Positions 3,002 through 27,200 of a DNA stretch of 64,000 nucleotides are shown piece after piece. Every line of letters begins with the position of its first letter. Within the stretch, counting starts at the first letter, position 1. Both the position numbers and the translations under genes were made by a program. The notes beneath the pieces are model-generated. The model was given only the letters and a program-made list of their open reading frames with translations, was not told the DNA's origin and searched no databases. Source of the stretch: Schizochytrium sp. TIO01 (Eukaryota > Protista > Bigyra: Labyrinthulomycetes); NCBI GenBank assembly GCA_004764695.1, contig SMSO01000014.1:1173648-1237647 (forward strand). The letters are read 5' to 3'.

Positions 3002-3487
3002 GGTATTTGGATTGAGCGTAACTTCTATATTTGTTGTGTGGCTATAGATTTACTTTGTTAGATTTTCTTCCTTGAATAGAAGAGTTGACTAAGGCCAAAA
3101 CGCTGAAGAGGGCATGTGGTATGCGAGGCATATTTCATTTACAATTTACTGGGCTCAACATACTTGGGCCTTTACATAACATAAGATTAGGCTCTGTAAG
3201 ACATTTAAATTTGTTACTAGAACTACATGTTTCTTTAATGTTTTTCGGGCGTGTGTGTTTTGTTTGAAAACGAACAAACAATAAACTATATATTCTCTTT
3301 GCTGTTGAGTCAAAGTAACGGGAAGCTGAACGACATCAACTACCACAAAACACTGGCTACTTCAGACTTCGCAGAAATACTCGATTTTTATGAATGAAAT
3401 TAACAACGTTCTCTGATTTCAATATCGTAAACATATGGAATCAGAGATATGAATACATGCAAAGCTATGCTAGCATGGGAGACGCAA

Positions 3488-7645: not shown

Positions 7646-9812
7646 GGTAAAGTGGCCCTCGTGGCCGCAGCCAAGCGGCTCAGACTCGGGTTATGGAGGC
7701 TTCGTGCCGCAGGGAAACGATTGTCGACTCATAAAAAGTTTTACAGTGTCTATTGTTTATCTTATTTAAGTAAATCCTCACGTCAAGTGAAAATCAAAAA
7801 CAATATTAATTGTATCGCTCATTATCCTAAATCTTTACTTACTATTTTGCTCAGCTGTTGTTGTTTTATACTCCTTTCTTCTCATTCGTTTCGTTTCTTC
7901 TCGGCAGAATGAATCTTTTATCGCATATACCTTATTCATTACAAAAAGTAAGAGTGCGAATTACGAATGGACCATTTCATCCCAGTTTGCTCAGCGAAGA
8001 AGATCACGGCACAGGGTGATTAGCACACCCAGCTAGACAAGCGTGGCGCATTGAGGATGCTGGTGGTAGGTATTTAAATGCAGCAGGGTATTTATATATG
8101 CATAAAGAAGAATTCATAGAATAAGAACCAAATAGAGTGGTTGTTGTTGTCGTTCTTGGAGTGCGTGCTGTTGCTTACGTGAAGGTGTTTGCGAACTCAA
8201 ACGAACTTAAGTTTGAGGATTTCCTGAACAAGCGCTCAATCGAGGACGTAGATAGTGATCGAAGTAGTGTACCCTCCGCGTAACTTTCGTACATACGAGG
8301 TTTGCAATATGGAGAGCAAGAAACTTGCAACGATGCATGCTCGCTCGATCGTAGGATGCTGATGTATTTAACAGAAAGTGCTGTGGAGCCCCAAAGTGTA
8401 GTATCCAGTGGTAATCCTGAGAATCAACTACTCACTCATTCGCTCAGACATCGCTCAGACAGTGAGAGCAGCAGATTAGAGCAATTTCATCAAAGGCTCT
8501 GGCCATCTTGAAGGTGCTCAGGGATACTGCAAAGCAACACAAAGGGAGTCAATCTATCAATAAAGGCGGGTAGTCTCGACAAATAATACAGCTGAAGCGA
8601 GTCTTTCGCCTACCGATGACAAATTGCAAATAGAACGATATGCGTAATGGGGAAAGGTTGCAGATTGAGCCATACAAGTGTCTTCAAAGTTGCAACATAC
8701 TCGAATGCAACTAAAATCCTGTACACCGGTCGAGTGAGACTGAACAATACGAATCCAAGAAAAACCTAGAGACAAAGTAAAAAAGGCCAAAAAGGAAATC
8801 CCATCAAGCTCTCACACTCAGACATGTGTCCGTACTTAGCAATACCTTCAAGGTGACTTGCTTCTGACCCTCCTTTTGTCATCTCTCCCATTGCTCATTG
8901 TTCTGCTTCCACTCATTATCCATCGCAGCACATTCAAAGGTTGCTATACCCCTGCCTGTCTGAATGGCCACATACTCTTATTTTATATTAGTTGTTGTTG
9001 AGCATTGCCTTGAGTTCTCCCACAATTGTGTCTATTTTGTTGGCACCATACGCCTGCCGCAACCCTATGTTGTTCTGCAGAAAGGGTTCATGCATTTATA
9101 TCTCATAAAATATGTAAGAGCCTTGAGAATAGAGTTTTAGAATACCATGATTGAGGCTTGCAGAACGAAGTATACTTGATCTCAATCTCAAAGATGAATA
9201 AACAAAATTCACAATTACAAGCCTTAAACATCATTCTTGTAGTTGAAATGAAGGAGTTGAGAAAACCATTGAAGTGAGCCACTTTAACTTTCTCCGCCCT
9301 TCCTCACAACAGTAATGAAAACTTAGCAACCCAAACGCAGAGCCTCCAGATTGGCCGAGCGCTCAAATCTTATTTCTAGCCAAGATAAAAACCGTTCTGA
9401 TGCAATATATCTTCATTTCACCGTGAGATTTGGTTTGTAAGGTCAGTCTTCCCAGATTGGAACGTTCACATAGCTAGGCTTGGAATTCATCACGTGCGTA
9501 ATCATTGAATCTACTTCATTCATGATTAATTTTATTATTATTTATCATTGATATTATTGATTAAAAAATAATTTTTAATTATTAAAATAATAAAAAGAAA
9601 TGTAAATAATCTAACTACGGAAATGAAACTACTGAAGATGAGGATGTAGTATGCAATGACGCTCTCGAGCTCACGCTCAGCGCCTAGCACCAATTTCCAA
9701 GCACCAGACACCAAACGCGAACCATCGCTCGTGATCATCACATTTCTCCTGACAAAGGAATCCTCTCTATACGCTGCGTGACGCCTTTCAACAACCTTGA
9801 AGTTGCACAGGG

Positions 9813-11324
9813 ATGACCAGTGCATATGAGAAGGCACGGCTTGCCCGCATTGAAGCAAACGAAGCCTTTCTTGCGGAGCTAGACGTGGGGAAGGAAAGGC
9901 GGAATGCCGAAGCCCCTCTGGTAAAGGCAAAGCAAAGCAAGGCCCGTGCTAGAGAGGTCAATCGAAAACGTAGAGCTCGGGAAGCTGAACAGAACCCGGT
10001 TCCGCGAAGAAAATCGTCAAGGCTAGCAGGAAACCCTGCAGAGGGTATGTATGTGGATTCTGTGAGCAGAGGCAAAGTCACTATCGCAGGATTGCCATCT
10101 TCGATGACCAAAGAAGTCAGAGATCTGGTGAGTACCACGCCTGCTGCAAACTCGCGTCGCGAAAGATTCAACGAAGAGATTTTGAATTTGGAGATTGAGG
10201 GTGACGACGAGGCCCATGGAAAGGCATTCTTTGAGTCCCTGAAGAAGACTAGCAGTGACAGCGATGACAAAAACGGCAATGCCGAGGACTCCGAGGAAGG
10301 CCTCAGGGAAAGTGAGATGGACTACGCAGCAAAACTCAGTGCGCTGGAGTGTCAAGGTTCTGAAAAGGTTGTACAGAGTCGAGGTTATGCAGTGGCGTTC
10401 CACCCAAAATTGCCTATTCTATGCGCAGGCGACCGCGATGGTCAGCTAGGTCTATTAAAAATCCATGAGGACGCCGCTACAGAGCTTCAGGAAGAAGACA
10501 TCGTGCAGTTTAAACCGCATGTTTCTACAATCAATGTTGTGGAGTACGCCGATACCTCTCTTTTCACAGCCAGCTACGACGGAACTGCTCGTAAGATGGA
10601 TCTTGGAGCACCAGGTCGGTTTGAACTGTTATACAAATCTGATGAAGAGCACGGCTGGCTGCAGCATGCAGAAATCACGCATCAAGGTAACAATTTGGTA
10701 ATTGGATTTTCGGATGGCTACGTCATGAGCATCGATGCTCGCGCACCTACCGAGTCTAAACCTGCCTGGAGTTTTCAGGCCCATGATAAAAAGACACAAA
10801 CAGTGAGCCTTGACCACACTGGAAACTTTCTCTGTACCAGCAGCCTGGACCGTAGCATTAGATTATGGGATGTTCGTAAGGCCTCTTCGTCCAGGAAACC
10901 TCCTTCACCAATTTGCACGTTTGAGGACAGGTACAGTATTAACTCGTGCAAGTTTAATGCAACAGGGGATCGTCTCATCGCAGTGGGCCAAAGCAACAAG
11001 CTTCATCTCTTTATGAATCCCCAGAAATCTACAGATGGTGAACTGAAACCATCACATTCCCTTGCCCATGATAACCAAACTGGCCGCTATCTTGCTGTTT
11101 TTCATGCCAACTGGGACCCAAAGAATCCGTCTGCCTTCATTTGCGGCTCAATGTCAAAGCCTCGTCGGGTGGAAGTCTTTTCCACTGATGGTGGCAAAAT
11201 CAAACGCATCATGAACCTTGCAGGCGATGCTATTGGGTCTGTACAAAGCCGCAATGCATTTCACCCAAATCAAAATATGATTGCTTGCCTCAACGCGAGT
11301 GGGCGTGTTAGTATTTTTCGCTAA
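9813..11324 (+). CDS. WDR76: WD repeat-containing protein 76 / CMR1-like
   Basis: 503 aa. N-terminal SAYEKARLARIEANEAFLAEL and RKSSRLAG, WD40 repeats (TSSLDRSIRLWDVR), and the HDNQTGRYLAVFHANWDP motif typical of WDR76/CMR1. Confidence 0.88.
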   Translation: MTSAYEKARLARIEANEAFLAELDVGKERRNAEAPLVKAKQSKARAREVNRKRRAREAEQNPVPRRKSSRLAGNPAEGMYVDSVSRGKVTIAGLPSSMTKEVRDLVSTTPAANSRRERFNEEILNLEIEGDDEAHGKAFFESLKKTSSDSDDKNGNAEDSEEGLRESEMDYAAKLSALECQGSEKVVQSRGYAVAFHPKLPILCAGDRDGQLGLLKIHEDAATELQEEDIVQFKPHVSTINVVEYADTSLFTASYDGTARKMDLGAPGRFELLYKSDEEHGWLQHAEITHQGNNLVIGFSDGYVMSIDARAPTESKPAWSFQAHDKKTQTVSLDHTGNFLCTSSLDRSIRLWDVRKASSSRKPPSPICTFEDRYSINSCKFNATGDRLIAVGQSNKLHLFMNPQKSTDGELKPSHSLAHDNQTGRYLAVFHANWDPKNPSAFICGSMSKPRRVEVFSTDGGKIKRIMNLAGDAIGSVQSRNAFHPNQNMIACLNASGRVSIFR

Positions 11325-12399
11325 TTTTTTTTCGTGTCTTGCTTTTCTTTAGCTTCTCATTTTTTCCTTGTGGGAGCTATGTCAAATGTACCGAAAATCA
11401 CGTGACTTCTTCATATATAATAGACATGGTAATCAAAGCACTCAAAATTAAGTTAATGCTATAGTAGTCGAATCTTTGCCCTTTTAAAAAATTAAAGTAA
11501 TAGACGGATACAGTAAGTCGGGTAGAAAAGAACATTAGGTTAGGCGAGATTAATACAATAAAACACTGGTTCATTATTTGACTGGAGAGATCAGTGGCAA
11601 TTTATACTTTGAAGAATGCTGCCGGTCTTGATTCAGCCCCAACTTCACGTATATTGAAGCTAAAATATCAACCTTTATAATCCAGAACCAGAACCCAAAG
11701 AACCTGATTCCATCCTTCTTTCTCTTACACAGTTATGACAACTCCTGGGTCACATAATCGTTCTACAGTCTTTTAATTAAAAGAGAACATACCTTTAACT
11801 ATTGCGTTAGTCTATGTAGGAAGACCTGACTTGTTAAATTTATTAGATGTCTCTTGGCAAGGGCTTCGGACAAGCGAAGAGTGAATGTAACTGGTTAGCT
11901 ATGATAAACAATACCCCTTCATGATCGTGTTGATTAGGACCTAATATGGTGATCCTGAAAAAGTAATACATTGAAGGTGTATACTCCAGATTGAACTCTA
12001 ATGGGTGTCAATTGAAGAAATTAATAAACTGCAAGAAAGAAGAAATTTTTGAAGCAAGATTTTGTATTTCATCCACATACAAGATCAGCTACCTTTCTGC
12101 AACCAGATACACCGGTAATATACTTACGTGTTATTGCTGTCGTTATAAAATGTCGTGAAGCCTTTCCAGTTATCTAACATATGGAGGCTCTGAACTTGAT
12201 TCGCACCTTGAATGTAGTGTTTATTTTAGTTTTGGGTTTGGATCAGCAAGTGTTCTCTGATATAGATCATATTTTCACTGGACTGGTGTTTATCAAACTG
12301 ACTTGTCTTGTTGCCCTTGTTTCATTTCGTCTAGGTCAACGGACTCAGACTTGTGATTCCCATCTTTATCGCCTGCATCATGTTGTTGTGTTCCTTGAG

Positions 12400-15300
12400 T
12401 CATCGCATGTTGGCCTTTGGCGCTACTAGTACTTTCGCCTCCTCGGTTGCCTGCATATCTTGGAGTTGCCTGAAGTGCCGTTGTTGTTCGAGAACCGCAG
12501 AGGCCTGAAGAGCGGCCATTGTCACATAAGAGTATACCTGCTCGAGAAGAGGAACAATACTATTAATAGCAACATGCACGCCCAATGAGTTAGACACCGC
12601 TGTCGAGAGTACTCCAATCACCTGGCCATGGTCATTAATGAGAGGACCACCCGAGCTTCCCTCGAGGTTGAAAAGTGCAGCATTGATCGATGTCCGATTA
12701 GGTGAAAAACCTTGTACGCTACCCTGGTCCATACAGATGGTCTCTGCAGCACCACGTGACAAAGGAAAACCCACCAGCGCGACCTTGTCACCAATATTCA
12801 CAAGATGAGAATTGGCTATTGGCAAATCAGCAGGCAATGGAAGGCCTTCGCTAATCGGGGGGCCGATACAAAAGTTAATTTTACTGCCCCAAACAGAGTT
12901 CTCAAGACCGGTACTATTGTAAACCTCACGAACCTGCCCGACAAGGCGAAGAACAAGAAGGTCCACAAAGTTAGTCCGAGGTCTATTGATAACGCGTGCG
13001 CCAGTGGCAAAACTTGGAGGCTGGCTTCTACTTTTTTGGTCTCCGGCAGCAACAATAGCAGCTTCGTACTGCCATATTGGTAGAGAATCTTGGCTGCTGA
13101 AAAGAGCAACAATGATGCGTTTTGTCGAATTTTGACCAAATGTGAATTTCCGCGCATTCGCACGAGGATCGGTTACTAGGTGGCAAGCAGTGACGATGAG
13201 ACCGCGGTGACGATCCATAACAAATCCACTGCAGGACTCCAGGAATCGTTGTCTTTGGTCACAGTAAACACCAATGCGTACAATGGTGCGCGCATCAAGA
13301 TACTCACCAGACTGAAGAGGAAGCAAATGCTGATCCGGGCGCGTAGAGAGGCTCAAACCATAATCACCCACTGTTCTAAGACTTGGTACCATGGGTCCAC
13401 GCGGTCCACCTTGGGAGGGAGAGCACAAAAGCGTGTGTGTTTGATTTGGTGGAGGGGTTGGAGGTGAGTGGACCTCAGGTTGGGTTTGAGATGCAAAACC
13501 CCTTCTCTGGGTTCGAGAAGCCTCCAAGGGAGGGAGAAGACTGCTGAATGACTGTTCTGATGACGATGGCATGGAAGGGGAGGGGGCATGTAGTGCAGGG
13601 CGGTTCAGATTGCAATGATCCTTGGATGCAAGGTCTCGTTTAATCTCCATTTGATCAGCAATCTGTGCTTCAGCAGACTCCGGAATATCATCCAACTCAG
13701 AGTCTTCAGCAGTACCATCTTCACCATCTTCTGCAGGATTCTCTTCGGCTAGTACTTCAGCTGGTGGAGGAAGGAGCCACATGAGAGGACACTCGTGGGA
13801 TGGAATGTGTCTTGACTCAGTATCACACATTGTACGACAAAGCTGCGCCGTCGGCTTTCGCCGCGGGCGCGATCCTGCTGTCTGGCCCGAAGCCACACTA
13901 ACTGGCGCGTTTCGCGCGTGCAAATCTGCGAAATAGTCTCGCCAATTTTGCTCAAATAGATCAACCTGGCGCTCTTGTTTTTCCTCTACATCACGAATGT
14001 GAAAGGCGTGCGCACCACTGAAATCTTCGTCCTCCCGGAGATGCGCCAAGCAAACCGGGCAACGTACGAGATAGAACCAAGTGATACCCATATATTCATA
14101 AATAAGTATATCTTCGATTGTATCTTGCAGCATCTCAACCTTATCCCACATTTCGTGTAGTGCAGCACGAGGGGAACCCCATGCGCAAATATCTAAAACA
14201 GAACGTTCAGAGTCAAAAGATGGTTCGCCATCCTCGTACTCACGAGCAGCCGAGGAAGAGAAAATACGTTCTTGCTGCTGGCGAATAAGAAGTTTGATTG
14301 ACCCTTGCGAATCCAGGAGCCGAATTAAGCTTGCATCTTTCCATGTCCGAATCTCTGCTGTTGTTTGAGGAAACTGCTTGGAGACACGAGTCAATATCTT
14401 CTCCATCAGGCCGGGAGGTTTAAACCGCGGAAAAACAAAGCTTCTGCCTATCTGAATAGCGGTTTCGCATTTAGGATCAAGTTTTGGCCACCGAGACTTG
14501 ATGTCGAACAGTTTAGTGATCAAACATGGAATGATCCACTGCCGTTCATTTGTCGATGAAAGAGCGAGTGGACTACACACATCAAACTGCTCAAGAATGT
14601 GGAGTAGCCCTTCAAAGATCGCTTCGTCTTTGGATTGTTGTTGTTTGCTTCGACCCTTTGCAAATAACTCATGCCAGAGACACTTGAGAAGCTGTTCCGA
14701 TAAGATTCCCTTGTCCTTCAGTTTTTTCACATCGCTAAACATACTACTGTCCTGGCCCATGGAGACCCGACCTCGTCCCAGTCGACGTATGTTGCTATTC
14801 GAACTTGTGCTGCTCCGACTGCTCCCTGTACTTGATTGGCGAGATAAAGGCAGCCCATTGTTTGCTGATGCCCCATTACCTTCCATACGCATCCGTGCAA
14901 CCCGACGTGCAGCTACTGATTTTTGCTGTTTCGAGTTCGAGGATGTTCGTCTCAATAATTGGTCGATCACATCATGGTCTACTATACGCTTGATGCAATC
15001 AACAATGTAGTTGGGGTCTAACACCACCATGTCCACACTACGGTTCACAACAATGTGCCCAATATCCTTAAGAAAATCAACACATTGTCCTATATCTGCA
15101 GACTCAACGGGCTCCATACCTAGCGCCTCGGCGCCTGCAGCTACAGCGGTTTCGAGTTCAGCCCACGAACAAACAGGGCGCATGCGTCTGTCCCTTTGGA
15201 GTTGCTGGATTGCATCTTCCACCACACTCCAAGTTTGCGGGATACAGGCCAATGAACCAACATGAGGGAACAGATTTGAGTCACGTACGATTTGCAATAG

Positions 15301-18300
15301 ACGAGCGCGTAACTTATCAAAGCCTGCACCACTACGAGCTGAGACATCAATTATACCATCGAGGACACGTGGGCGCTGCCGAAGAAGAATTCGGGGTCGC
15401 ATCTCATGATATTCCTCTAGACCAGATTCATCTTGCACTTCCTCCTGAGATGGGCCAACGCCTGGTTGAAAAGCTGTTGTTCCTTGTGATTGAGCATCAA
15501 AACTCACATTGGGCACACCATAAACCTGCCGTCGAAGACGAGTAGAAGAAGTTTTTGCAGAAACAACACTCATGGTTGAGGCTATGTCTCCCATATCGTT
15601 CATTGATTCTTCAAGTTCCTCTTCCCTTACCATGTCAGCTAAATCTCGTTTGCGCCAGGTTTCATGTTGATTAAGACGAGCTAAAAGTTCTTTCTTCCGC
15701 TGTTCCAAAATCTCAGGGCTCACCGAATCCGCCTTTGAGGCAATAATCTGAATGACTGCTCCAGGCACGCGTGCTTGAACAGAATACACCCAAAAACATA
15801 CTGTCATATCGAGCTCAGCTTCAGTATGCTTACTCACATCCCACACAAGAAGATAGAGCGTACGTCGAGAAAGAAAGATCTGGTGTGTTCGATAGTACAC
15901 ATGTTGGCCTGCAAAATCCCACATTGTCAGTGTCTCGACCTTATCGTTGCTGTCTCGAAGTTGACACGTATGAATATCCACTCCAAATGTGCGATCTTCT
16001 TGCACACTGGTCTCACTGCAACCAGAAATCAGAGTGCGAATAAGTGATGATTTTCCAGCAGCGGAATTGCCGAGAACTACGACCTTGAAGTTCCTTCGCT
16101 TTTTAGGTGGTGGAATTGGAACAATGTTTTCTGAAGTCGTTGTGGGGCGCTGGGCAGACGAAAGAGGCTGTGGAGGTGGATGTGCTGAGAGGCCGGGAGT
16201 ACTGGCATCTTCCAGCTGTGAAGTATCTAGAAGTCCACTAAGCCCACCAGAAACTAGTGGCTTAAAATCATTTGACTTCCTATTTGGAGCAATAGCAGAA
16301 GAGTTACCTGATGACTTGCTCTTGTCTTCGAGTGAAGGTTTTCCTGGATTTTTCTCCGGGCTATTGTATTGAGATGTTTCCATGCTTCCATTTGCATCAC
16401 CTTCCGCATTTGCAACGACTCGAGAAGCTAACCCAATTTCTGCGCGAGTCGATTCGAACGAGCGCATGGAGTTTGAACGACCGAAAACACTAGGAAAACC
16501 TGAGTGGCTTGCACTTTCTTCGAAATCACTTTCGTCAATTCCTGAAATCAAACCAATCCCACGATTTTGGCTCAATGAGCCACCAGAGTTTGCACGACTG
16601 CGCCCTCCGGAAGCTTCCTCGGTATTACGAAAGTTGTCCTTGCTAAGGCTTTGGAAAAACTTGCGAACAGCAGTAGGTCCTTTCGAGACAACGCTCATTG
16701 GTGGCACTTGAAGGAGAAGATTGCCGCTCGCGCGGAGGACACGAAGGTTATCCATAAATTTGAAACACTCGGGAAGCGCCGAAAGCTGATTTGTGTGCAC
16801 GCTTAATTGCTCAATTTTCAAAATTGCCTCGCAAAAACGCACATCTAGTGTTCCCTGAAGGTTGTTCATGCCAATATCGAGGAATTTCAGAGTCCGTCCA
16901 AGTGAACCAAACAGCGCAGTAACAAATTTCTCAGAGTCTTGTTCAGGGACGAGACGCTCCAAGTCATTATCCCGCAAATCAAGATACTCCAGTGCGGGAA
17001 GTGTGACAAATGCTCTCGGGAACTCGCGAATGTGGTTATGGCTTGCAGATAAGAGTGTCAAGGATCTTAAGGTAGACATATTAGCTGGAAAGCTGGTTTC
17101 TGTGAGCTGGTTGTAATCGATGTGCAACTCTGTGAGATTGGCAAGGGTAAGAATGTGGCTTGGGAATTTTCGAATGAGGTTGCGATCGAGGTCAAGAATC
17201 CCGATTCGATTGCTGGCAACCTTGTCACGTGCCAGATTTCGTAGTGCCGGGACCCTGGTCAGCCCACGCTTACGCAGGCTCAGCTCAATTGAAACCAGAG
17301 TAGGGCTATCTCGGCATTCGCGAATAAATCGCTTCACTTCTCTACGTGTGAGGCGAATTTGTTGCTCATTGGCTTGTACAGTAGCTCCTTTGGACAACTT
17401 TGATGCATGTTTGATTCGCAACAGGTGTTTTTGAGCAGAAATCAGGGCACTTGCATCTCCTGAAAGATCAATCTGCCCGAGACGTGTAGAGTCAGGTCCA
17501 GATCCAAGACTTCCAAAAACCGTCTCCGAAGATAGCTGAAGACCTGATGCCTCGTGTGCGCCTTCACAAAGGGGCTCGCCAGACATAGGCTGTCCACCTC
17601 TGTTGTTTTTTGCGTGGGAACGTTGGAAAGTTGAACTTAAAATTTTCTGTTTCGGGGGAGATGCGTCATCTAGTGCATCATAGGATGCATCGTGCACATC
17701 AAAAAATCCAGTTTCGTCTTCGTCAAGGTCCTCATTATCTCCGTCTTCGCCATCACTATTTTCACTGTTCTCGCTTGCCTCGTTTTCGCTAGTCTCAAAT
17801 CCCATCTGGAGGTTACTTCCACCATTGACTTTCATGAAGAGTGAATTGTGCTCCCTTCCGCGGTCACTGCTGCCAGAATCTTCATTTGCTTCTGGAATTT
17901 TGCACAAGTCATTGCGTTCGTCTGAAGAAACAGATGAAAATGAAAAGTCATCTTCATCTCTGTCAGAGTCGTCCTTGTTATCGCTTTCACCATAATCGCC
18001 TTCTGTAAAGAACGCCCCTTCCGCAGAGAGAGTCCGTCGAATTGAAGGAGCATGGTTGGTGCGCCTGGACATACTCCCATCCAGAATATTTTTTTTGCCC
18101 TTAATGAGACCAGAATTCCCTCCTTGTTGCAAGCCCTTTAACGATTCGGAAGGGGAGCCCTGATCGCGTAGTAAGGTTTGAATATTCGGCGACGAGGTCG
18201 CCGTAGTCTTAAGCTCCGATGGAGCCGCCATGGTCCCATCAGCATAAGGCCAGTACCCAGATGGCGCATCTTTAAGCAGAAGATTGTGAGTACTACTTGG

Positions 18301-18579
18301 ATTTGTGAGAGCCGCCGTTGCTGGCGAAATTGAGCCGTTTGGCATTGCGCGTGGGTTACGGCGACTCCTGGTCCAGCGTCTACCATGCGTCTTTGAACGC
18401 GAACCTCCTGAAACATAGCCTTCATTCCTATCGGGGCGTTCCACAGCATTCGAGTTAGGTTCCTCCCGCACTCGTCTGGAGGATTTGCTACGTCTGCCAG
18501 ATTTTGTTCGCCGCAGCATGCGCTCCTCCAGGTCGCCGCCATGGTCGTACTCATAGAGTTCCTTTGCCTTCCCGCTCAT
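12400..18579 (-). CDS. Roco protein (LRR-Roc-COR) with C-terminal trypsin-like serine protease domain
   Basis: First ATG at 18579 (ORF track opens at TTG 18600; an upstream exon is possible). LRRs at about 17300-16700. Roc GTPase motifs GNSAAGKS, RTFGVD, WDFAGQ, SKAD, VSARSG. COR motifs VVLDPNYIV, WIIPCL, PPGLMEKIL, RCPVC. Protease motifs TACHL, VDLLVL, EGSSGGPL. Confidence 0.92.
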   Translation of the reverse strand: MSGKAKELYEYDHGGDLEERMLRRTKSGRRSKSSRRVREEPNSNAVERPDRNEGYVSGGSRSKTHGRRWTRSRRNPRAMPNGSISPATAALTNPSSTHNLLLKDAPSGYWPYADGTMAAPSELKTTATSSPNIQTLLRDQGSPSESLKGLQQGGNSGLIKGKKNILDGSMSRRTNHAPSIRRTLSAEGAFFTEGDYGESDNKDDSDRDEDDFSFSSVSSDERNDLCKIPEANEDSGSSDRGREHNSLFMKVNGGSNLQMGFETSENEASENSENSDGEDGDNEDLDEDETGFFDVHDASYDALDDASPPKQKILSSTFQRSHAKNNRGGQPMSGEPLCEGAHEASGLQLSSETVFGSLGSGPDSTRLGQIDLSGDASALISAQKHLLRIKHASKLSKGATVQANEQQIRLTRREVKRFIRECRDSPTLVSIELSLRKRGLTRVPALRNLARDKVASNRIGILDLDRNLIRKFPSHILTLANLTELHIDYNQLTETSFPANMSTLRSLTLLSASHNHIREFPRAFVTLPALEYLDLRDNDLERLVPEQDSEKFVTALFGSLGRTLKFLDIGMNNLQGTLDVRFCEAILKIEQLSVHTNQLSALPECFKFMDNLRVLRASGNLLLQVPPMSVVSKGPTAVRKFFQSLSKDNFRNTEEASGGRSRANSGGSLSQNRGIGLISGIDESDFEESASHSGFPSVFGRSNSMRSFESTRAEIGLASRVVANAEGDANGSMETSQYNSPEKNPGKPSLEDKSKSSGNSSAIAPNRKSNDFKPLVSGGLSGLLDTSQLEDASTPGLSAHPPPQPLSSAQRPTTTSENIVPIPPPKKRRNFKVVVLGNSAAGKSSLIRTLISGCSETSVQEDRTFGVDIHTCQLRDSNDKVETLTMWDFAGQHVYYRTHQIFLSRRTLYLLVWDVSKHTEAELDMTVCFWVYSVQARVPGAVIQIIASKADSVSPEILEQRKKELLARLNQHETWRKRDLADMVREEELEESMNDMGDIASTMSVVSAKTSSTRLRRQVYGVPNVSFDAQSQGTTAFQPGVGPSQEEVQDESGLEEYHEMRPRILLRQRPRVLDGIIDVSARSGAGFDKLRARLLQIVRDSNLFPHVGSLACIPQTWSVVEDAIQQLQRDRRMRPVCSWAELETAVAAGAEALGMEPVESADIGQCVDFLKDIGHIVVNRSVDMVVLDPNYIVDCIKRIVDHDVIDQLLRRTSSNSKQQKSVAARRVARMRMEGNGASANNGLPLSRQSSTGSSRSSTSSNSNIRRLGRGRVSMGQDSSMFSDVKKLKDKGILSEQLLKCLWHELFAKGRSKQQQSKDEAIFEGLLHILEQFDVCSPLALSSTNERQWIIPCLITKLFDIKSRWPKLDPKCETAIQIGRSFVFPRFKPPGLMEKILTRVSKQFPQTTAEIRTWKDASLIRLLDSQGSIKLLIRQQQERIFSSSAAREYEDGEPSFDSERSVLDICAWGSPRAALHEMWDKVEMLQDTIEDILIYEYMGITWFYLVRCPVCLAHLREDEDFSGAHAFHIRDVEEKQERQVDLFEQNWRDYFADLHARNAPVSVASGQTAGSRPRRKPTAQLCRTMCDTESRHIPSHECPLMWLLPPPAEVLAEENPAEDGEDGTAEDSELDDIPESAEAQIADQMEIKRDLASKDHCNLNRPALHAPSPSMPSSSEQSFSSLLPPLEASRTQRRGFASQTQPEVHSPPTPPPNQTHTLLCSPSQGGPRGPMVPSLRTVGDYGLSLSTRPDQHLLPLQSGEYLDARTIVRIGVYCDQRQRFLESCSGFVMDRHRGLIVTACHLVTDPRANARKFTFGQNSTKRIIVALFSSQDSLPIWQYEAAIVAAGDQKSRSQPPSFATGARVINRPRTNFVDLLVLRLVGQVREVYNSTGLENSVWGSKINFCIGPPISEGLPLPADLPIANSHLVNIGDKVALVGFPLSRGAAETICMDQGSVQGFSPNRTSINAALFNLEGSSGGPLINDHGQVIGVLSTAVSNSLGVHVAINSIVPLLEQVYSYVTMAALQASAVLEQQRHFRQLQDMQATEEAKVLVAPKANMR

Positions 18580-20256
18580 CAGAGCACCATGTGTATCCAA
18601 ATATCCGTGGCCACCTTCGGTGCTCCTGCAAAGTCTCGCTTGCTAGCAACAATTTACACCGAGAAAATTAATCAACGAAAAAACAACAAACTTGACCCAG
18701 CAGTAAGACACGAACCTGTGATGCAACAAACTGGAGATCGATGTGTCCTTTATAGTCTTAGACTTTTCGAGATTTCCAAAGTGGCTTGGATCCCAAGAAT
18801 TCACAAGAAAAATCAAAACAACCTCGGCCTCTGAAAAATATCGAGACGTTCCGAACCAGAGCAACGGTCTCGCTTCTGCTTGTAATCTTTATTGCTCGAA
18901 GGTTGGTTTGTACGAAGCCCTGAGAGTGGGAGATATTTTAAAAACTAGGCAAGCGGAAAATACAAGGAAGGAGGCAGGTGTGAACGAGCGAAATGATTGG
19001 TCAAAGAAACCAGCAGGCGCGGAATCAAACTTCGCGAACTCCTCTACAGTGAGGCCCTCCGCTCCAGATTTCGCCGCACAGTCCGCTCAGAAGAAGAGGA
19101 AGTTCTTCCAAGGCAACCCTACGCCTACGCCTGACTGATCCTCGCTCCGTTGCTCTGCGTCGAGCCTTCGAAGGGGATTGAAGGACTCTTCGACTGCGCG
19201 AACGATCGCTCTCTTTCTCTCCTTTTTTAATTTTCAAAGCCATATATGAGGCGTTTACACATAGTTACTTAGTAGGTGCCAAAGTCTAAATCAACGAAAT
19301 TTCCAACATAAAATCAAATGAAAACTCCAACGAAAATGTAGGAAGCCCCTGATCTCGAATACCTTCTTTTTTGCGTTGCCTACGAGGGTTTTGAGGATTC
19401 CTTATGTGTGTAGGGATTATTCAATATTTAGAAGGGGTGTGTAGGAGCTGACGATTGTGGATTGTTCGTCATTTCTTGCTAAGAAGAAAGCCACCAGAAC
19501 GGGCTTCTTGGCAAAGTAATGCTGAGAATCATTACAACCAATCATGATAGTAACTACCTATAGCGATACACATCTGGCCAGCAATACGAAAAGTCCATCC
19601 AGAAATGGTTGTGGCTCTGCATTCATGCAAAACACATCCTGAATAACTTCAAGTGGTTACGGATAGACTTTCTTTTATTGTAGGAAAGGAGCACCTCCTG
19701 ATGAGACTAGCAGTTTCCAATACTTTGACGATGAAATGTTTCAAAGAGCTAGCATCTTTCTTAACTTTCTTCATGAGAATTATTGCTGTTCTTTATAAAT
19801 TATTGACAAGGCAATATATGCGATTTGTTCAATGAGATCTGCCATGTAGGACATTTCATGTGCTCGTTTCATAAGAACTGCTGAGGTACCTAGGTACTTG
19901 CATAATGGGTAAAAGTTGGCGGAAAAGTATAATGTGATGAAGTTGAGCTTTTATCTGGTGTAGATGAAGCTACTGCGGAAGTTGTATGTGATGTGATTTA
20001 CTGTGACAATGATATGTTTATAAATATACCGAGTGGTCTTTGCGAAGAATGTGTCAAGGTATGATGTCGGAGCCGATTAGCACCAGCTGTGTTGTGGGTT
20101 GTGCTTATGTAATGCTGGAATTTCCATACATGAGCTAAACCGGTGTGATGAAAACGACTGGTAAATATGTGTGTTTAAAGAATTTGTGGGAGTTTTTTTT
20201 AATGGTGGGCGAGATACGACTTATTTGCCATACTTCCTTAATTCTTGAAGTGAGAA

Positions 20257-20337
20257 TGTCTTGTTCTGTAAGAGTACATTTTGCGCTAGGGTTAACTGTC
20301 TTGTTCTGTAAGAGTATATTTTTGCGCTAGGGTTAAC
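20257..20337. repeat. Tandem duplication of a 40/41-bp unit
   Basis: TGTCTTGTTCTGTAAGAGTACATTTTGCGCTAGGGTTAAC (20257-20296) is followed directly by TGTCTTGTTCTGTAAGAGTATATTTTTGCGCTAGGGTTAAC (20297-20337): one substitution and one extra T. Confidence 0.95.
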
Positions 20338-22720
20338 TTCCTTTGCAAGCATTACTACGACCGAGGTTTCAAAAAGTAAATCAGGTGATCATTGAAGTGC
20401 GACGTATCACTTGTACAAATTAAGACATTGAGCAGCTTCTTCATAGTTTCCTAAACCTAGATTTTGAGGAAGAAGATGATCTTATTTTTTCCGATTGATC
20501 TCACCACGTTGCGCATGCGTACGTATTTAAAAATATCACAATCTAAAGTTGAAAGACAAGTCGTGGAAATGACTGCAAAGCTTTTGCACAATTAACACAC
20601 AAGTCGAAAGTATTGTATGTTTGAGAAGGTGCTTGGGCGCACAGTAAATATAAGGAATCTACAGTTCAAATGCGAATTCAATAGAATATCTCTCCACGCC
20701 ACTAACAGTGTGTCTGAACCGGAAGTAATTGAGTTGAACGATAAATTAAAGAAATCGATGCTGATAAATCTCACAAAGACTCTCGTTTTGAAGGTACTAG
20801 GATGGAGAGTAATAAAATGATGGAAGATGTCGAGAATTTGTGCATAGAGTAGAACGAAAGGCATCTGAAGAGTAGAAATTATCTAAAGGAAATGCAATGA
20901 TTCAAATTTTTAGCATCACTTTGTACATGTTTTATATTGTTTAACGAATACCTGGAGTCACTGTCAAGAAAAATTAGGAACATTAGAAGTTTTGACTTTT
21001 GTGTTATCCGTCTCTAGATAGAGTAAAGAAAAGTGTAGCCAAGGGGCAAGTTGGGTGTACTAAGCCAAAGAAAGTCCCAGGTTGCTTGGTCATCTAGTTA
21101 CTCTTTCTTCGGTTCAAGTATGTTCTTCGAAGTAAAGCAGCAATCAGAAGTAGTGAGAATTATACTGCTAGGCAAAGTTTTTGAAACGTCTTTATGAGTT
21201 CTGTGGTTAAAACTAACTTTTACTTATTTATTTCACTCCGCTTGATCAACAACTATTCTACAGTGTTTTGTGACTGTGAGTTTTCTAAATCTTTTGCTTA
21301 GAAAAAAGCTTTAACATAAAGAAATTCTCGATAACTCCGACGTCGGCAGGTCACAAATATATGTGCCTGAGCTTTTCCTTCATCTTGTAGAATATATTAA
21401 GTCAACCACGACGATAGACATCCTTTCTTTAGCGTTACGCGCTGTTATGTTTTGTTGTTACGAAAAATGTAATTTTGCTTTGCAAACTAATATAAAAAGT
21501 AGCTGAGTTTAAGAAAGTATATGCAATCCAGGCAAAATTCGAAGCAAGTGCTATGCGTGCCTATGACACGTCCCTTTGAATCTGATAGGCTTTCGCTACG
21601 CATGTAATGCTTTTGAACGTTCGCATATTGCCGTTTATCTTTTTACCGCTCCCAGGTACCCCTAAAATGTGTTGATGATTCAACTTTCCCCGAGATTTTG
21701 GTAAAAGAGAGCATTTTGTAGTTACTTCAAGTTACAGATTAGCACACAGCGTGCATGCATTGGGAAAAGTGGAGCTTGAAGAAAATGAGGAATTTAATTT
21801 CCGGTTTCTCATGTATCTGTGTGAAAAACCTTAATAATATTGGACCTTCAGTGTATTATCCTTACGATGATCTCAAACTAAAACGATATTTCATTTTCTC
21901 CACTAAACCATAGTTGTAATTTATTCTATTTAAAATTTTAATAAAAAAAAGCGAAAAAAATAAAAAATACTTCGATGTCCTCAGGTTGCAAAAACCTTTG
22001 GCGTCGTTTTATTTTATTTCAATCCTAAGAAAGAATGGTATTTGTGGGCAATATTTCAGGTCTCGATAGGATAGGTTGCGGCTTGCGACGAGCGTATTCT
22101 TCATCTTCAAATCATCAAATCAAAAGTAGTACGTATATAGGTAACTAGAGGTATTAGCGGTAGTATGCGATTTTTCTAAATCTTTTTCGTTTCCTTTCTT
22201 TTGATTAAATACTTAGGAGCTCCGCCTCTGCTAGGTTTAAAACTACGACCTCTCTATCTTTCAGAATGGACTAAGGATATATATAGTTTACAGTAATAAT
22301 TGCTTCCTGTACTATCTAAGGACTTATGGGTGGACGCGCCAGAAAATCATTAATAATAGCATAAGTACCTATGCACACAATTGATGTAAGAAAGCCTGTG
22401 GGAAACAAAACCAGCGATCAGTAAAGACAAGGAGCCTCCAAGAAGCGAAACGAGACACCAACGTTCTTGCTCGGGATGTTAGGATGCCTTTTGTTTACTG
22501 TAATAAGGCGCACATGTTAGTATCTAAAAAATTTAAGTAAGAAGCCTAAAATTTGTTATTCCTATTCTTATGTTAACGTATATTATAAGCTTTAAAAAAA
22601 AGGGGGGGGGAAGGTTATAGATAGTGTGATTGGTAGCATTGCTATTATGGAGAGTTTTTCTCTGTTCTAATTTTTTTTTTTTAATAATTAAAAAAAATAG
22701 AGAGACCAAGCAGACAACTG

Positions 22721-23143
22721 TCAAAAGAAAGAAAAAGAGCAACGGTTTGTTTTGTTTGCTTGCTTGCTTGCTTTCGCAGAGCGAGCCTGAACGGGTGAGA
22801 AGAAGCCCAGAACGCGAGACAAAGCTGATTCTATGACGCAATTTAAGATTATATGGTATTCAGTAATGGCCTTTCCAACTTCACGAAGTTCGTCAGCACA
22901 CGCCATCGTAGTTGACGATCATCTCAGCTCGTTTTCAGTCTTGAGAATTGGTTTGTCCTCGATGCTATTCTTTCAGCACTCTTCCAGCAGAAATGCCACA
23001 CGCAAGTATCAAAAGCACTTCATGCACCTCGGAGCCCGCAACCAGGGTTTAACTTCGTCTGAGTTGTCGTCCGTGGCCAAGTTTGACAACTCCGTCAAGA
23101 GCTCCATGGATGACTTTGTGGGTGACGAATCTGAACGAAGTGC
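22721..23143 (-). pseudogene. Coding-like frame interrupted by three in-frame TGA codons (probable gene relic)
   Basis: Frame reads ALRSDSSPTKSSMELLTELSNLATDDNSDEVKPWLRAPRCMKCF*YLRVAFLLEEC*KNSIEDKPILKTENELR*SSTTMACADELREVGKAITEYH... It is GC-richer than its flanks and is preceded by an intron-like pyrimidine tract with CTAAT..AAAG. Confidence 0.45.
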
Positions 23144-23769
23144 CTTTTATACAAATAAATTTATTAGTTTAAACTAGAAGAAGAAAACTCATCATGCAAA
23201 AAAAGAAAAGAAAAATAAAAGAAATTGGTAAAGTAGTAAGGCAGGTAAATCGAAAGAATGTGAATAAATGCTGGTCGCTCTTTTGGAGTATGCTTTGAGC
23301 TGGGGCTCTCTTCAAGACATGTGGCAGCCAATCTTGGTTCTCAAACATCTCACCCAAGCATGAGGACCTTGAGTCGCTGCCCAGAGCTGTGGCTCAAGTT
23401 GTTCTGCCGCTGATGAATCAATCGAAGAATCGACCATCCCATTCTTGCCTTCAATCATGATGCTCAATTCTTTTCACTTTCTGTGAAGGTACATCTTTAT
23501 GCATGCATGCCTACCATCTAGATAGCGCATGCTAGCACTGCCTCTATCAGTGGTATAGTACGCCGGTGCTAGTGTTATGCTTAGGCACCTACGTCCATCC
23601 ACATTGGTATCCTCCCTCTCCTAGGGCTGTTCTAGTGGTTTCGGGTAGCTATGCTCTTTCGTTTACAGTTGAAGGAGAACATAAGAAATGAAAGAAAATT
23701 TAAAAGCGTCTAGCTAGGTAAGTAGGTAATGGTTACTCTACCTCGAAGAGAAAGAGCGAAAGATTGAGT

Positions 23770-23846
23770 GAAAGAATGACAGAATGAAAGAATGAAAGAA
23801 TGAAAGAATGAAAGAATGAAAGAATGAAGGAATGAAGGAATGAAAG
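23770..23846 (+). repeat. (GAATGAAA)n octamer tandem repeat
   Basis: About 9 copies of GAATGAAA, with GAATGACA and GAATGAAG variants, about 450 bp upstream of the helicase start. Confidence 0.92.
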
Positions 23847-24287
23847 ATGGAGAAGCGGGCAACGGCAATGACGAAGATGATCGCATCGACCTCAGCTCAG
23901 CAGTGCAAGTGGTGAGGGAGTGAGGTCTTGGGCTCTCCGCAGACAGAAATGAATGCCTGATTGATGGAACGAAGATAATGCTCGTGAACTTGAAGGAAGG
24001 AAGAGGAAGAAAGTCCCTAGTGTTGTCAGGTAGTACCTTCGTAGGCGCCTCGTAGGAAAAAGTTTTATGCTCTAAAAAGGTTTAAATATAAAAATAAAAT
24101 AAAACTTCTTATTATGACTAGTAAAGAGAATGAGAATGAATGAAAATGAGTGAACATCATCATCGATCAATCCTAAATATCGATCGATTGATCGCTCCTT
24201 GGCCGCAGCGAGCGCTCTTTCTTTCCTTTCCTTCTCTCGCGTTCTCGGACTTCGTTCCCTCGGCGCCTCTGCAGGCAGGCAGGAACC

Positions 24288-27200
24288 ATGATGGCCAGAC
24301 CGGTCCGCACGGGCCCTCGGCTCACCAAAAAGGCCCGTGAACGCAAGCATGAGGCGGAGAAGGCCGACAAGGCTTTGGGCGGTGCCACCATGAAGGAGGT
24401 TGAGGGCGAGGAGGCCACCAAGAAGACCCCGCACTGGTACGTGGAGCTCCAGTGGTTCCGACTTCTTCGTGGACAGGCCCGCCTCAACCAGATTGCACGT
24501 CTTCTCGTGGAGCTCGCGCCTAACAAGGTCTTCGACCCTCGCGAAATCTACTCTTCTCACCTCAAGGACGAGGCTGTCCACCAGATTCAGGACGGCGTTC
24601 AGGACGGCGACAACGAGGACAACAACGAGGGTGAAAGCGGTGCCACCAAGAAGAGTGCCGACAAGGCCAAGCCCAAGAAACTTAGCAAGGCAGAGCAGAT
24701 CCGTCTGCAGAACACTCTGAAGCGTCAGAAGGAGGCTGCAGCAAAGGATGCCGAGAAGTTGCGTACCCTTGGTACGCAGGCTGGCGCAAAGATTAAGCTG
24801 AAGACAGAGTCAGGTAAGCTTCTGTTGCTTCTGGGTATGTTGAAGCAGGCTGTGCGCGATAACCAGGTTGTGGATGTGTTGGACACCATGTGGGAGATCG
24901 AGGAGGTCTCAAAGGAGGTAGACGAAAAGGAGCGCAAGGCTGCTTTCAAACCGTATGCCGATGTGATCCGCCAGGCATCCGAGATTCGCAACTCGCGCGA
25001 GGCACTGGGTGGCGTAAACATTTACGACTTTCAGCTCACAGCTATGAGCGACCGCTTGCCGCCGCTCAACTTACACTCGCTCTCGGGCAAGTTTAAGCTT
25101 GATGACTGGCAGCTGCACGTCATTGACCTTATTAACCGTCGTAAGTCTGTGCTCATCACGGCCCCGACCTCATCTGGTAAGACCGTGCTCTCCACCTATG
25201 TCTGCACCACTGGCCTCAAGGTTCTCTTCACCGTTCCCTCTGAGCCGCTTGCCTGGCAGGTCGCTGCCATGCTGCGAGCACTCAAGGTTGATGTCGCTAT
25301 TCTCGTCCCCACACTCACCTACGTGCCTCTCAAGTGGACCGTTGTTGTCGGTACCCCGCACTCGCTCGAGAGTGGCCTTACGAAACAGGTTGGCTTCGAC
25401 TTTGACTATATGGTTGGTGATGAAATCCACTCGCTCAACAACCAGGACGGACCCGCTCTTCAGCGCATTATCCGTGCGATTCCCAAGACCTGTAAGGTTC
25501 TTGCTCTCTCGGCCACCATCGGTAACGCAGGTGAGCTCAGAAACTGGTGGGAAACCATCGTTGGCGAGAATGAGATTGAGCTCGTCGTGCACAAGTCTAG
25601 ATTTATCAACCTCCAGAGGTACGTCTGGGCCCAGGACTTCAGTGGAAACGAAAAGACTATTGAAGACGGCCAGGAGAACATCTCGGAGACAGGAGGTAAG
25701 CTGCAGCTGTTACATCCGGCATCAGTGCTTACGGTAGAGTACCTTGCAAGCGACGAGTACGCCTCAAGTGATTTGGCGTTCACGCCGGTAGACGCGTATG
25801 CGCTGTTCAAGGCAATGGACGCCCTGAGCAGCTCCTCTAGCGTGAATGTGGATGACCTCAAGCCCAAGTCTTTCTTTGCTAAGAATGGCGCTCAGCGCGT
25901 GACTCTCATGCAGGCCAAGGAGTACGAAGATGCTCTCAAAGAACGCCTCGTGCAGATCGCCAAGGAGGAGCCCGATATGTGCAGACTGCTGTTGGCTTCG
26001 CTCGCTCCTGGATCTAGTCTCAAGGCTATTAAGAAGACACGCAAGCCTCTTCTCAGCCAGCCCAAGGAAGAGCTCAACCGCCATGACCGCGAAACAGCGG
26101 CGCAGCTTATGGGAAGAGTTGAAGGAGCTCTCGAGTCCTCTTCTGTGAACACAAGCAACGCAGCCTTGACAGACCTTATGTTCGACTTGTACAAGTCGGA
26201 GCGTGCACCGGCCATCTGCTTCCAATTAGATAGTGTGCGTTGTCAGAGTATGTTCGACGGAATGCTCCGCGAGCTTGAAGAGCGCGAGCTCCGCAAACAC
26301 CCGAACTACAGACGCGACCTTGAAAGGAAGGCTAAGGGTCTTGAAAAGTTGCGCGAAAAGGCTGCCAAGAAGGGCGGCAAACGTGGCGGTGAGGAGGATG
26401 AGGCCGCAGAGGCGCAGGAGTTCGGAGAGACCGTGAACGAGGCAGTTGACATCAATGCACCGCACCCGGAGTTCGTGCTCACGCCGCCAGGACGTGGCAT
26501 GAGCGCTGTGGAGACACGAGATGTGGAGGACAAGCTCAGAGACGACCTCCCTCCGAGCGGAGACCTGCCTCACCCGCTGATTAGAGGTCTTCGCAGAGGT
26601 ATTGGAATGTACATCGAGGGTCTCAGCTCTGCATACCAGCGCCTTGTGCAGTCCATGGCTCAACAAGGTCGCCTTGGCGTTGTCTTCAGTGACGAGCTTC
26701 TCGCTTATGGTGTCAACATGCCGTTCAGGTCCGCCGTCTTCTTCGGAGACCCCGGTCCCGAATGGCTCACCCCGCTCCTTCACCAACAGATGGCTGGTCG
26801 TGCCGGTCGTCGTGGTCTCGATCGACAGGGTAACCTCATTTACTGCGGATTTGCACCCAGTCGTCTCAAGAGCTTGCTTCGAGGCCGCTTGCCAAGAGTC
26901 ACCGGCCGCTGGCCGCTGTACCCGACAATCCCTCTGCAGTTGGAGATGAACAAGAGATACGAGGTTGCAGGAGCACCGCTGACAGACGAGAAGATGCACG
27001 ATATCTGCTCAACGCCGCTCGCAGAGTGGCTCGAGAAGAAGACCGTGGACAACTACTACGGTGTCGCGGAGGACTGGATCAAGCAGCTCGGCATTCTCGA
27101 GCACCCGCCATCATCATACAACTACCTTATCCCCGAGCTCGTGTGGGAGCTGCGTAAGTTCCTTCCCGAATCTCTTGCTCTTGAGTACCTGCTTGAGCCC

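Follow-up and report, generated by a model that had tools for sequence, protein, structure and literature searches.

A single-copy gene of the marine thraustochytrid Schizochytrium sp. TIO01 (Labyrinthulomycetes) encodes a cytosolic Roco-family protein in which leucine-rich repeats (LRRs), a Roc GTPase domain and a COR domain are joined in one chain to an HtrA-like serine protease. This one-chain architecture had been proposed in an earlier note made from the sequence alone, and it is upheld by Pfam, by an invariant catalytic triad and by a predicted HtrA-like fold. Overall, the conservation of the gene seems to fit a signalling protease better than a fast-evolving immune receptor. It lies in a window of 64,000 nucleotides, the whole stretch of DNA that was analysed, in which the ORF listing gives, on the minus strand, one frame without stops (12400..18600); its first ATG lies at 18579 and yields a protein of 2059 aa. 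From the N-terminus onwards its parts are a disordered region, about eight LRRs, Roc, COR-A and COR-B, a CPxC...C cluster, a flexible tether of about 140 aa and a PDZ-less HtrA-like protease, arranged in the window as follows:

12400..18579, minus strand: coding sequence (2059 aa plus stop) of the intron-less Roco-protease gene (ORF listing, Pfam, contigs of four public runs)
17305..18579, minus strand: low-complexity N-terminal region, probably disordered, aa 1-425 (composition scan)
16645..17290, minus strand: LRR domain, aa ~430-645 (Pfam LRR_8/LRR_4/LRR_14)
15295..16089, minus strand: Roc G-domain, aa ~831-1095 (Pfam Roc at 4.7e-19, motifs, similarity to LRRK2 Roc)
14080..15279, minus strand: COR-A and COR-B, aa ~1101-1500 (Pfam COR-A, AF2 model)
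13765..14076, minus strand: Cys cluster after COR-B, aa ~1502-1605 (conserved in the family alignment)
13345..13764, minus strand: acidic, Pro/Ser-rich flexible tether, aa ~1606-1745 (composition)
12520..13332, minus strand: PDZ-less HtrA-like serine protease (PA clan, Trypsin_2), aa ~1750-2020 (Pfam, AF2, Foldseek, VIA)
12400..12519, minus strand: C-terminal helix and tail, aa 2021-2059 (AF2 model, run contigs, next-frame reading)

The ORF listing, Pfam and a motif search agree with the earlier note that LRRs, Roc, COR, a Pro/Ser-rich linker and the protease share one uninterrupted ORF, and Pfam likewise agrees that kinase and PDZ domains are absent (no such family at E ≤ 0.1). The N-terminal start, MSGK..LY.YDHGGDLEE, is kept in the Hondaea orthologue P0002. 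An artefact, in which neighbouring Roco and protease genes are read through as one ORF or the region is mis-assembled, is effectively refuted: the frame runs uninterrupted for 6.2 kb, the fusion recurs in Hondaea, as an annotated protein, and in two proteins derived from transcriptomes, and four independent public runs from four studies each give a single colinear contig of about 7 kb that spans the gene without joints. These runs are guessed to be RNA, none being recorded as such, and although the far ends of their contigs coincide at 19153-19220, they are only suggestive of expression and of the transcript ends. We found no support for an artefact; the sole oddity is an indel of 1 nt close to the stop. 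All four runs carry an extra C after 12440 relative to the window, whose last 13 codons are frameshifted relative to the strains of those runs; the alternative tail, about 36 aa longer and as in P0001, can be read in the window's next frame. The indel sits downstream of the protease domain and leaves the main finding unaffected.

A trypsin fold at the C-terminus, which the earlier note had named beforehand as a test, is confidently predicted. Pfam Trypsin_2 matches aa 1783-1990 with 51.5 bits (cut-off 27.6; 2.4e-13), and the AF2 model of the domain (pLDDT 84.9) finds HtrA1, DegP, DegS and DegQ as its top Foldseek matches at about 1e-11, with a VIA alignment to HtrA1 (3tjn_B) at Z 20.9 and an rmsd of 2.3 Å over 183 residues. 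The catalytic residues are His1800 in TACHL (1797-1801; codon 13180-13182), Asp1873 in VDLLVL (1872-1877; codon 12961-12963) and Ser1976 in GSSGGP (1974-1979; codon 12652-12654), the three codon positions first reported being exact in a scripted motif search. The triad is invariant in 6 full-length orthologues and in 18 relatives, and the protease is apparently active. Pfam finds no PDZ domain after it at E ≤ 0.1, the following 40-75 residues being mostly helical or of low complexity, and we therefore call it HtrA-like rather than a canonical HtrA. The two-barrel fold and the TxxH, D[IL]x[LV][LI] and GxSGGP motifs are common to it and to HtrA/DegP (MEROPS S1C), from which it differs in the absence of a PDZ domain and signal peptide, in an extra insertion of about 40 residues between His and Asp, and in its fusion to a GTPase. 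A trimer is tentatively predicted: the protease domain scored 0.73 as a homotrimer against 0.19 for the best of three controls, a score that the predictor may simply owe to HtrA trimers of solved structure, with contact agreement of at least 74% and partner pLDDT of at least 77 across the runs. Of 30 proteins solved as one-chain pairs, 21 attain that mark, and of 23 solved as single chains none does, a calibration that refers to two copies rather than three. Self-assembly of the protease domain as a trimer thus has tentative support in silico.

In the switch module, Pfam Roc covers aa 832-951 with 69.2 bits (cut-off 27; 4.7e-19), and the domain carries a P-loop (G1, GNSAAGKS, 837-844), G3 (DFAGQ, 888-892), G4 (SKAD, 948-951) and G5 (SAR, 1080-1082), with a conserved insertion of about 105 aa between G4 and G5 (aa 956-1060) marked by the motif RLNQHETWRKxDL. 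Its nearest solved sequence is the Roc of LRRK2 (6.9e-18). COR-A (aa 1114-1203) scores 33.8 bits, slightly below the cut-off of 35.3, which is passed in the orthologues P0003 (39.4) and P0005 (35.5); a disordered insertion interrupts COR at aa 1206-1285. The AF2 model of Roc-COR, of moderate confidence (pLDDT 66.7), aligns over about 730 columns with LRRK2, LRRK1, CtRoco (6hlu/3dpu) and MbRoco2 (4wnr), with structure matches between 1e-18 and 1e-12 (LRRK2, 1.2e-18). With a Roc that bears the G1-G5 motifs and a predicted COR directly C-terminal to it, the protein belongs among the Rocos. Like LRRK2 and LRRK1 it combines an LRR-Roc-COR core and a predicted Roc-COR fold with an enzymatic output C-terminal to COR; unlike them it lacks ankyrin, armadillo and WD40 domains, and where their kinase packs against COR its serine protease hangs on a 140-aa tether. 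Between COR-B and this tether, all 11 family members compared keep CPxC (1507-1510) and C1585, and H1595 is kept only in Labyrinthulomycetes; the cluster is possibly a metal site.

The same domain order is found in Hondaea P0002, in P0003, in Mucochytrium P0004, in P0005 and in Chattonella P0019, P0004 and P0019 each being a single assembled transcript (MMETSP). The gene is thus a member of a small stramenopile orthologue family with a common architecture, present 1:1 throughout Labyrinthulomycetes and in one raphidophyte. The NCBI name of the Hondaea orthologue, "LRRK2", is misleading. In the ESM Atlas, as a lead only, one cluster of 70 members has Trypsin_2 in 100% and Roc in 26% (score 0.97). 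G1, G3, G4 and G5 are strictly retained in all Labyrinthulomycete orthologues, which argues for a working GTPase, and their Roc cores share 63-77% identity. Both observations speak against a scaffolded, constitutive protease for housekeeping or quality control, in which LRR-Roc-COR would merely localise or dimerise the enzyme and nucleotide state would be irrelevant. This reading, which we consider improbable, draws on the long flexible tether between the modules and on two distant relatives with COR-A and Trypsin_2, P0073 and P0092, that keep the triad and COR without a recognisable P-loop (G1) or DxxG (G3) motif, from which it follows that the protease may function without a live GTPase. A candidate dead P-loop in Chattonella P0019 was dropped, as 287 aa separate DFAGQ from a GxxxxGKT upstream of it and the alignment there is unreliable.

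The conservation of the LRRs bears on what the protein senses. Pfam LRR_8/LRR_4 matches cover aa 461-615, and the domain is about 80% identical to that of Hondaea (79% at non-scaffold positions); compared across orthologues, no other domain of the protein is conserved better, and it equals or exceeds the catalytic domains. The N-terminal region (aa 1-425), by comparison, shares only 41% identity with Hondaea and 16-24% with the remaining orthologues. Going by these identities, strong purifying selection acts on the LRR surface, which suggests that this surface most likely senses an endogenous, conserved partner or signal and not a variable pathogen ligand. The earlier note had likened the protein to NLR/STAND-protease immune systems. 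Spelled out, that reading would have LRRs sensing a pathogen ligand, Roc-COR licensing assembly and the protease executing defence or cell suicide. In favour of such a sensor for innate immunity or cell death, an immune-receptor role has been proposed for brown-algal ROCOs (PMC11378527), and bacterial LRR-AP-GTPase-COR proteins with trypsin, caspase or TIR effectors have been predicted to form conflict systems (PMC8195603). The TIO01 genome itself also holds an expanded Roc-COR-TIR family of at least 21 loci (frames of about 850 aa), in which the same switch is followed by a C-terminal effector, in that case TIR. The analogy is not supported for this gene, however: the gene is single-copy with 1:1 orthologues, its ORF is continuous and free of exon cassettes, its LRRs are conserved, the opposite of a diversifying sensor, and the Roc-COR-TIR proteins form a separate family, with only 29% identity over 78 aa to its Roc. 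Moreover, Pfam gives no NACHT or NB-ARC match and the NTPase is a Ras-like Roc, which places the protein outside the STAND class, and any NLR/STAND likeness lies in logic, not family. We therefore regard an immune sensor as unlikely, if somewhat less so than a constitutive enzyme.

The earlier note knew of no characterised example and could give the impression of an unknown architecture, but two comparative papers had already listed LRR-Roc-COR proteins with a C-terminal peptidase or trypsin; the present gene adds a member and is not a new category. Brown-algal "group 3" and other SAR (stramenopile-alveolate-rhizarian) ROCOs bear the C-terminal peptidase IPR009003, are low in copy number and were inferred to descend from the SAR ancestor, ROCOs also being listed for Schizochytrium aggregatum (PMC11378527, Front Plant Sci 2024). 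Our gene fits this SAR group by its architecture (LRR, Roc-COR and C-terminal PA-clan peptidase), its low copy number and its stramenopile host, and is likened to group 3 by description. That study records the peptidase domain without analysis of triad, fold, Cys cluster, Roc insertion or LRR conservation. A query with the Chattonella protease domain returned only bacterial TPR-trypsin proteins and no brown-algal ROCOs. Among bacteria, trypsin is one of the C-terminal effectors of LRR-AP-GTPase(Roc)-COR proteins (PMC8195603, eLife 2021), whose module order equals that of our gene and whose proposed logic runs from sensor through GTPase switch to effector. The bacterial proteins differ in having multiple paralogues, at least 24 interchangeable effectors and fast-evolving LRRs. 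None of 13 bacterial Roco ORFs carried this protease domain in an HMM search, these having come from a COR-A search of 201 genomes of one order, a sample too small to speak to the published proteins. In bacterial and archaeal genomes, a scan with one protein returned no close bacterial relative of the protease domain, only generic partial HtrA-like matches, the best at E 1e-8 and confined to the C-terminal barrel. The statement that no LRR-Roc-COR-protease has been characterised stands for the literature searched.

Given a single copy and conserved LRRs, unlike the expanded Roc-COR-TIR family, we lean towards a conserved LRR-Roc-COR-protease gated by nucleotide and oligomerisation over an arms-race receptor, and consider this account as a whole somewhat probable. 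According to this model, the output of the Roc-COR switch would be the protease. Nucleotide state and partner binding at the conserved LRRs would shift Roc-COR between monomer and dimer and between conformations, as in other Rocos, whose monomer-dimer cycle runs via COR-B (reviewed in PMC6337361). This change would decide whether the tethered protease domains self-assemble, perhaps as the predicted HtrA-like trimer. In HtrA enzymes the active sites are ordered only in the assembled, ligand-activated state. Once assembled, the protease may act in trans on substrates or cleave the tether that holds it, with the LRR input most likely being a conserved endogenous partner or signal in stress, trafficking or cell-fate control. 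That nucleotide or ligand gates proteolysis can reasonably be supposed, and we speculate beyond this that the Roc state is coupled to proteolysis. Counting against gating, the tether is poorly conserved in sequence and length and modelled at pLDDT below 50, and such a disordered segment of 140 aa implies no fixed interface between Roc-COR and protease. A bolder version, which we think improbable, is an ancestral stramenopile GTPase-gated protease in which an endogenous LRR cue and the Roc nucleotide cycle drive HtrA-like assembly, and in which the mismatch between COR dimer and protease trimer forces higher-order, apoptosome-like oligomers that carry out regulated proteolysis, for instance in cell death or in remodelling under stress.

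How Roc-COR passes its nucleotide state to the output domain is a central open question for LRRK2, and to our knowledge nearly all work on this coupling has used kinases or bacterial Rocos that lack an effector. A single-copy, conserved Roco with a simple protease output and a clear read-out would offer an orthogonal test system, in a group with genetic tools, the thraustochytrids. If the ancestral GTPase-gated protease were true, control by Roc-COR of an enzyme other than a kinase would become experimentally tractable for the first time, and in a protist that can be transformed. Finally, two contrasting types of Roco occur together in the genome of one protist, a conserved LRR-Roc-COR-protease and a large Roc-COR-TIR family, and this contrast helps to tell "signalling" from "immune-like" Rocos.

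The protein encoded at 12400-18579 on the minus strand joins leucine-rich repeats (LRRs), a Roc GTPase domain and a COR domain, through a tether, to a C-terminal trypsin-like protease. A Pfam search of this Roco-protease and motif placement by script located the following features, all on the minus strand, with aa numbers referring to the protein:

aa 461-615: leucine-rich repeats, LRR_8, LRR_4 and LRR_14 (Pfam)
aa 832-951: Roc (Pfam, 69.2 bits)
aa 837-844: GNSAAGKS (script)
aa 888-892: DFAGQ (script)
aa 948-951: SKAD (script)
aa 1080-1082: SAR (script)
aa 1114-1203: COR-A (Pfam, 33.8 bits, below the cut-off of 35.3)
aa 1783-1990: Trypsin_2 (Pfam, 51.5 bits, cut-off 27.6)
13180-13182: His1800, in TACHL (script)
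12961-12963: Asp1873, in VDLLVL (script)
12652-12654: Ser1976, in GSSGGP (script)

The three triad codons are exactly those picked out in the earlier note, and its remark that neither a kinase nor a PDZ domain is visible agrees with the Pfam search, which returned neither family. The motifs around the triad fit the HtrA signatures TxxH, D[IL]x[LV][LI] and GxSGGP.

The gene is intron-less, and a single stop-free frame (12400..18600, minus strand) gives an uninterrupted translation. Its first ATG, at 18579, yields 2059 aa and is a credible start, since the N-terminal peptide MSGK..LY.YDHGGDLEE is common to P0002, the orthologue from Hondaea fermentalgiana. The assembly comprises 64 Mb in 37 contigs, and the window is part of a large one. 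The adjacent ORFs are typical of a eukaryote, namely genes for phospholipase D, a WD40 protein, a DEAD helicase, EHD/dynamin, Nup107 and a kinase. Directly upstream of the presumed promoter, GC content falls to 0.36-0.41 at 20001-24000, compared with about 0.45 elsewhere; beyond this stretch lies the GC-rich (0.54) DEAD-helicase gene at 24288-27833.

In each of four public sequencing runs from four studies, one contig of 6973-9489 nt covers the gene, and all four are colinear with 12000-17999 and have no joints. Their far ends, calculated from record length and offsets, fall at 19153, 19173, 19194 and 19220, a clustering that suggests a transcript start, with the runs only guessed to be RNA. 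The fusion is also present in two MMETSP proteins, P0004 from Mucochytrium quahogii and P0019 from Chattonella subsalsa, and relatives therefore make it as one assembled mRNA. An additional C follows 12440 in the contigs of all four runs (CCC for CC in the window), so that the gene's last 13 codons in the window are out of frame relative to the run strains; either an indel in the assembly or variation between strains explains this. A longer alternative tail, as in P0001, can be read in the next frame of the window. Further downstream, 1 nt is missing at 12234 in three of the runs, and 25 nt at 12014 (12014-12038) in two. The stretch 9660-12400 is bridged in run X9 by one 9.5-kb contig that leads from the convergent WD40 gene (9813-11324, plus strand) into the Roco gene; should X9 be RNA, these two genes yield transcripts that overlap or abut at their 3' ends.

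The closest match by sequence to the Roc domain is that of human LRRK2 (6.9e-18). An AlphaFold2 model of aa 820-1700 has an overall pLDDT of 66.7, with structured blocks at 70-90; its alignment with LRRK2 (1.2e-18), LRRK1, the C. tepidum Roco (6hlu, 3dpu) and M. barkeri Roco2 spans about 730 columns. Roc and both COR-A and COR-B are therefore present. Roc-COR proteins cycle between a monomer and a COR-B-mediated dimer as set by nucleotide state (review PMC6337361). The family adds elements of its own to this core. An insertion of about 105 aa between G4 and G5 (aa 956-1060; 15400-15714) carries the conserved motif RLNQHETWRKxDL, and no known counterpart of it was found; a disordered insertion at aa 1206-1285 interrupts COR. 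Following COR-B, the segment at aa 1502-1605 (13765-14076) contains CPxC (1507-1510) and C1585, invariant in 11 family members, along with a His conserved only in Labyrinthulomycetes. From these residues, the segment may be a candidate metal (zinc) site appended to COR-B.

The trypsin-like fold claimed for the C-terminus is supported. Across six aligned full-length orthologues, His1800, Asp1873 and the GSSGGP stretch (1974-1979) are invariant, and the His, Asp, catalytic Ser and flanking Gly residues are invariant in 18 relatives, distant ones included. On the 18-relative alignment, AlphaFold2 gave a confident two-barrel model (pLDDT 84.9, pTM 0.81). Foldseek matched the model best to the protease domains of HtrA1, HtrA3, DegP, DegQ and DegS, at about 1e-11, and VIA-align placed it on HtrA1 (3tjn_B) with Z 20.9 and an rmsd of 2.3 A over 183 residues. 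Sequence comparison alone reveals a resemblance to HtrA in the C-terminal barrel only (DegP, 5e-5). No PDZ domain follows the protease, the chain ending in a helix and a tail of low complexity. Self-association is predicted for three copies of the protease domain, at 0.73 versus 0.19 for the best of three controls, on a scale calibrated with two copies in which 21 of 30 proteins solved as one-chain pairs, and none of 23 solved as single chains, reached the 0.73 mark. Runs agreed on at least 74% of contacts, with partner pLDDT of at least 77. The predicted association may instead reflect recall of HtrA structures by the model. HtrA proteases are known to require assembly into ligand-ordered oligomers for activity.

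The LRR-Roc-COR-Trypsin_2 order recurs in the Hondaea protein P0002 (wrongly named LRRK2 in its record), P0003 (filed at NCBI under Durusdinium trenchii), the MMETSP transcripts P0004 and P0019, and P0005 (a protein from JGI, encoded on a contig of 317 kb), and COR-A plus Trypsin_2 fragments come from Aplanochytrium and metagenomes. A more distant JGI protein, P0157, has LRR_6, Roc, COR-A, WWE and Trypsin_2. P0003 (CAK9004495.1, on a 6.7-kb contig and named 'Plant intracellular Ras-group-related LRR protein 4') is labelled dinoflagellate and shares 49-71% identity, domain by domain, with the thraustochytrid protein; it may be a labyrinthulomycete contaminant in the D. trenchii assembly. An exhaustive phmmer search of 1.84 billion cluster representatives with the protease domain gave 435 hits at <= 1e-3, 12 at <= 1e-10 and 6 at <= 1e-30. 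The strong hits are Roco-protease orthologues and fragments and the others match the C-terminal barrel only; thus the domain is a narrow, divergent Trypsin_2/HtrA branch, almost always attached to COR. Bacterial and archaeal genomes gave generic partial matches only.

A 2024 study (PMC11378527) reports a peptidase domain (IPR009003) at the C-terminus of brown-algal 'group 3' ROCOs and also lists ROCOs for Schizochytrium aggregatum. In bacteria, LRR-AP-GTPase-COR proteins, treated as conflict systems, end in one of at least 24 alternative domains, among them TIR, caspase and trypsin (PMC8195603, 2021). The architecture is therefore catalogued, though not characterised. Proteases go unmentioned in the main Roco review (PMC6337361), and no paper in the literature searched combined Roco, a COR domain and a serine protease domain, so the earlier note's remark that it knows of no characterised example stands within that literature. 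The gene is a well-documented new addition to an already catalogued architecture.

Beyond this gene, the genome holds 24 or more loci with Roc plus COR-A. Two ORFs sampled from them proved to be Roc-COR-TIR. Examples of such frames are:

301-2871 of locus L007, minus strand: Roc-COR-TIR
556-3030 of locus L008, plus strand: Roc-COR-TIR

Of the open frames at the further loci, about 21 also have a TIR_2 match in the same frame; the TIR-Roco frames are about 850 aa long, with the Roc domain split by an insertion. According to PMC11378527, unicellular SAR species have no more than four ROCOs; this genome, with its large Roc-COR-TIR family of at least 21 loci, contradicts that statement. The Roco-protease is remote from these paralogues (29% identity over 78 aa) and, unlike them, is single-copy and intron-less, with the LRR domain as its best-conserved part.

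Domain identities, with the window protein as reference
Domain: Hondaea P0002; P0003; Mucochytrium P0004
LRR: 80%; 64%; 57%
Roc core: 77%; 71%; 66%
Protease: 78%; 49%; 45%

Non-scaffold LRR positions are 79% identical to Hondaea, and such conservation beyond the scaffold points to a putative conserved partner bound by the LRRs rather than to an arms race.

For the Roco-protease, the set of modules and its order, intact catalytic motifs in the GTPase and the protease, a long flexible tether and the conservation of all of these are established. Because Rocos cycle between monomer and dimer, HtrA proteases depend on oligomers and three protease copies are predicted to associate, the favoured reading is that nucleotide state and partner binding gate the protease. 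Strict coupling of Roc to protease is called into doubt by P0073 and P0092, two distant ENA metagenome proteins that retain COR-A and a Trypsin_2 domain with an intact triad and have no recognisable G1/P-loop or G3/DxxG; both are possible pseudo-GTPase members of the family. Under gating by nucleotide and partner, the Roc-COR and LRR domains would control self-assembly of the tethered protease domain.
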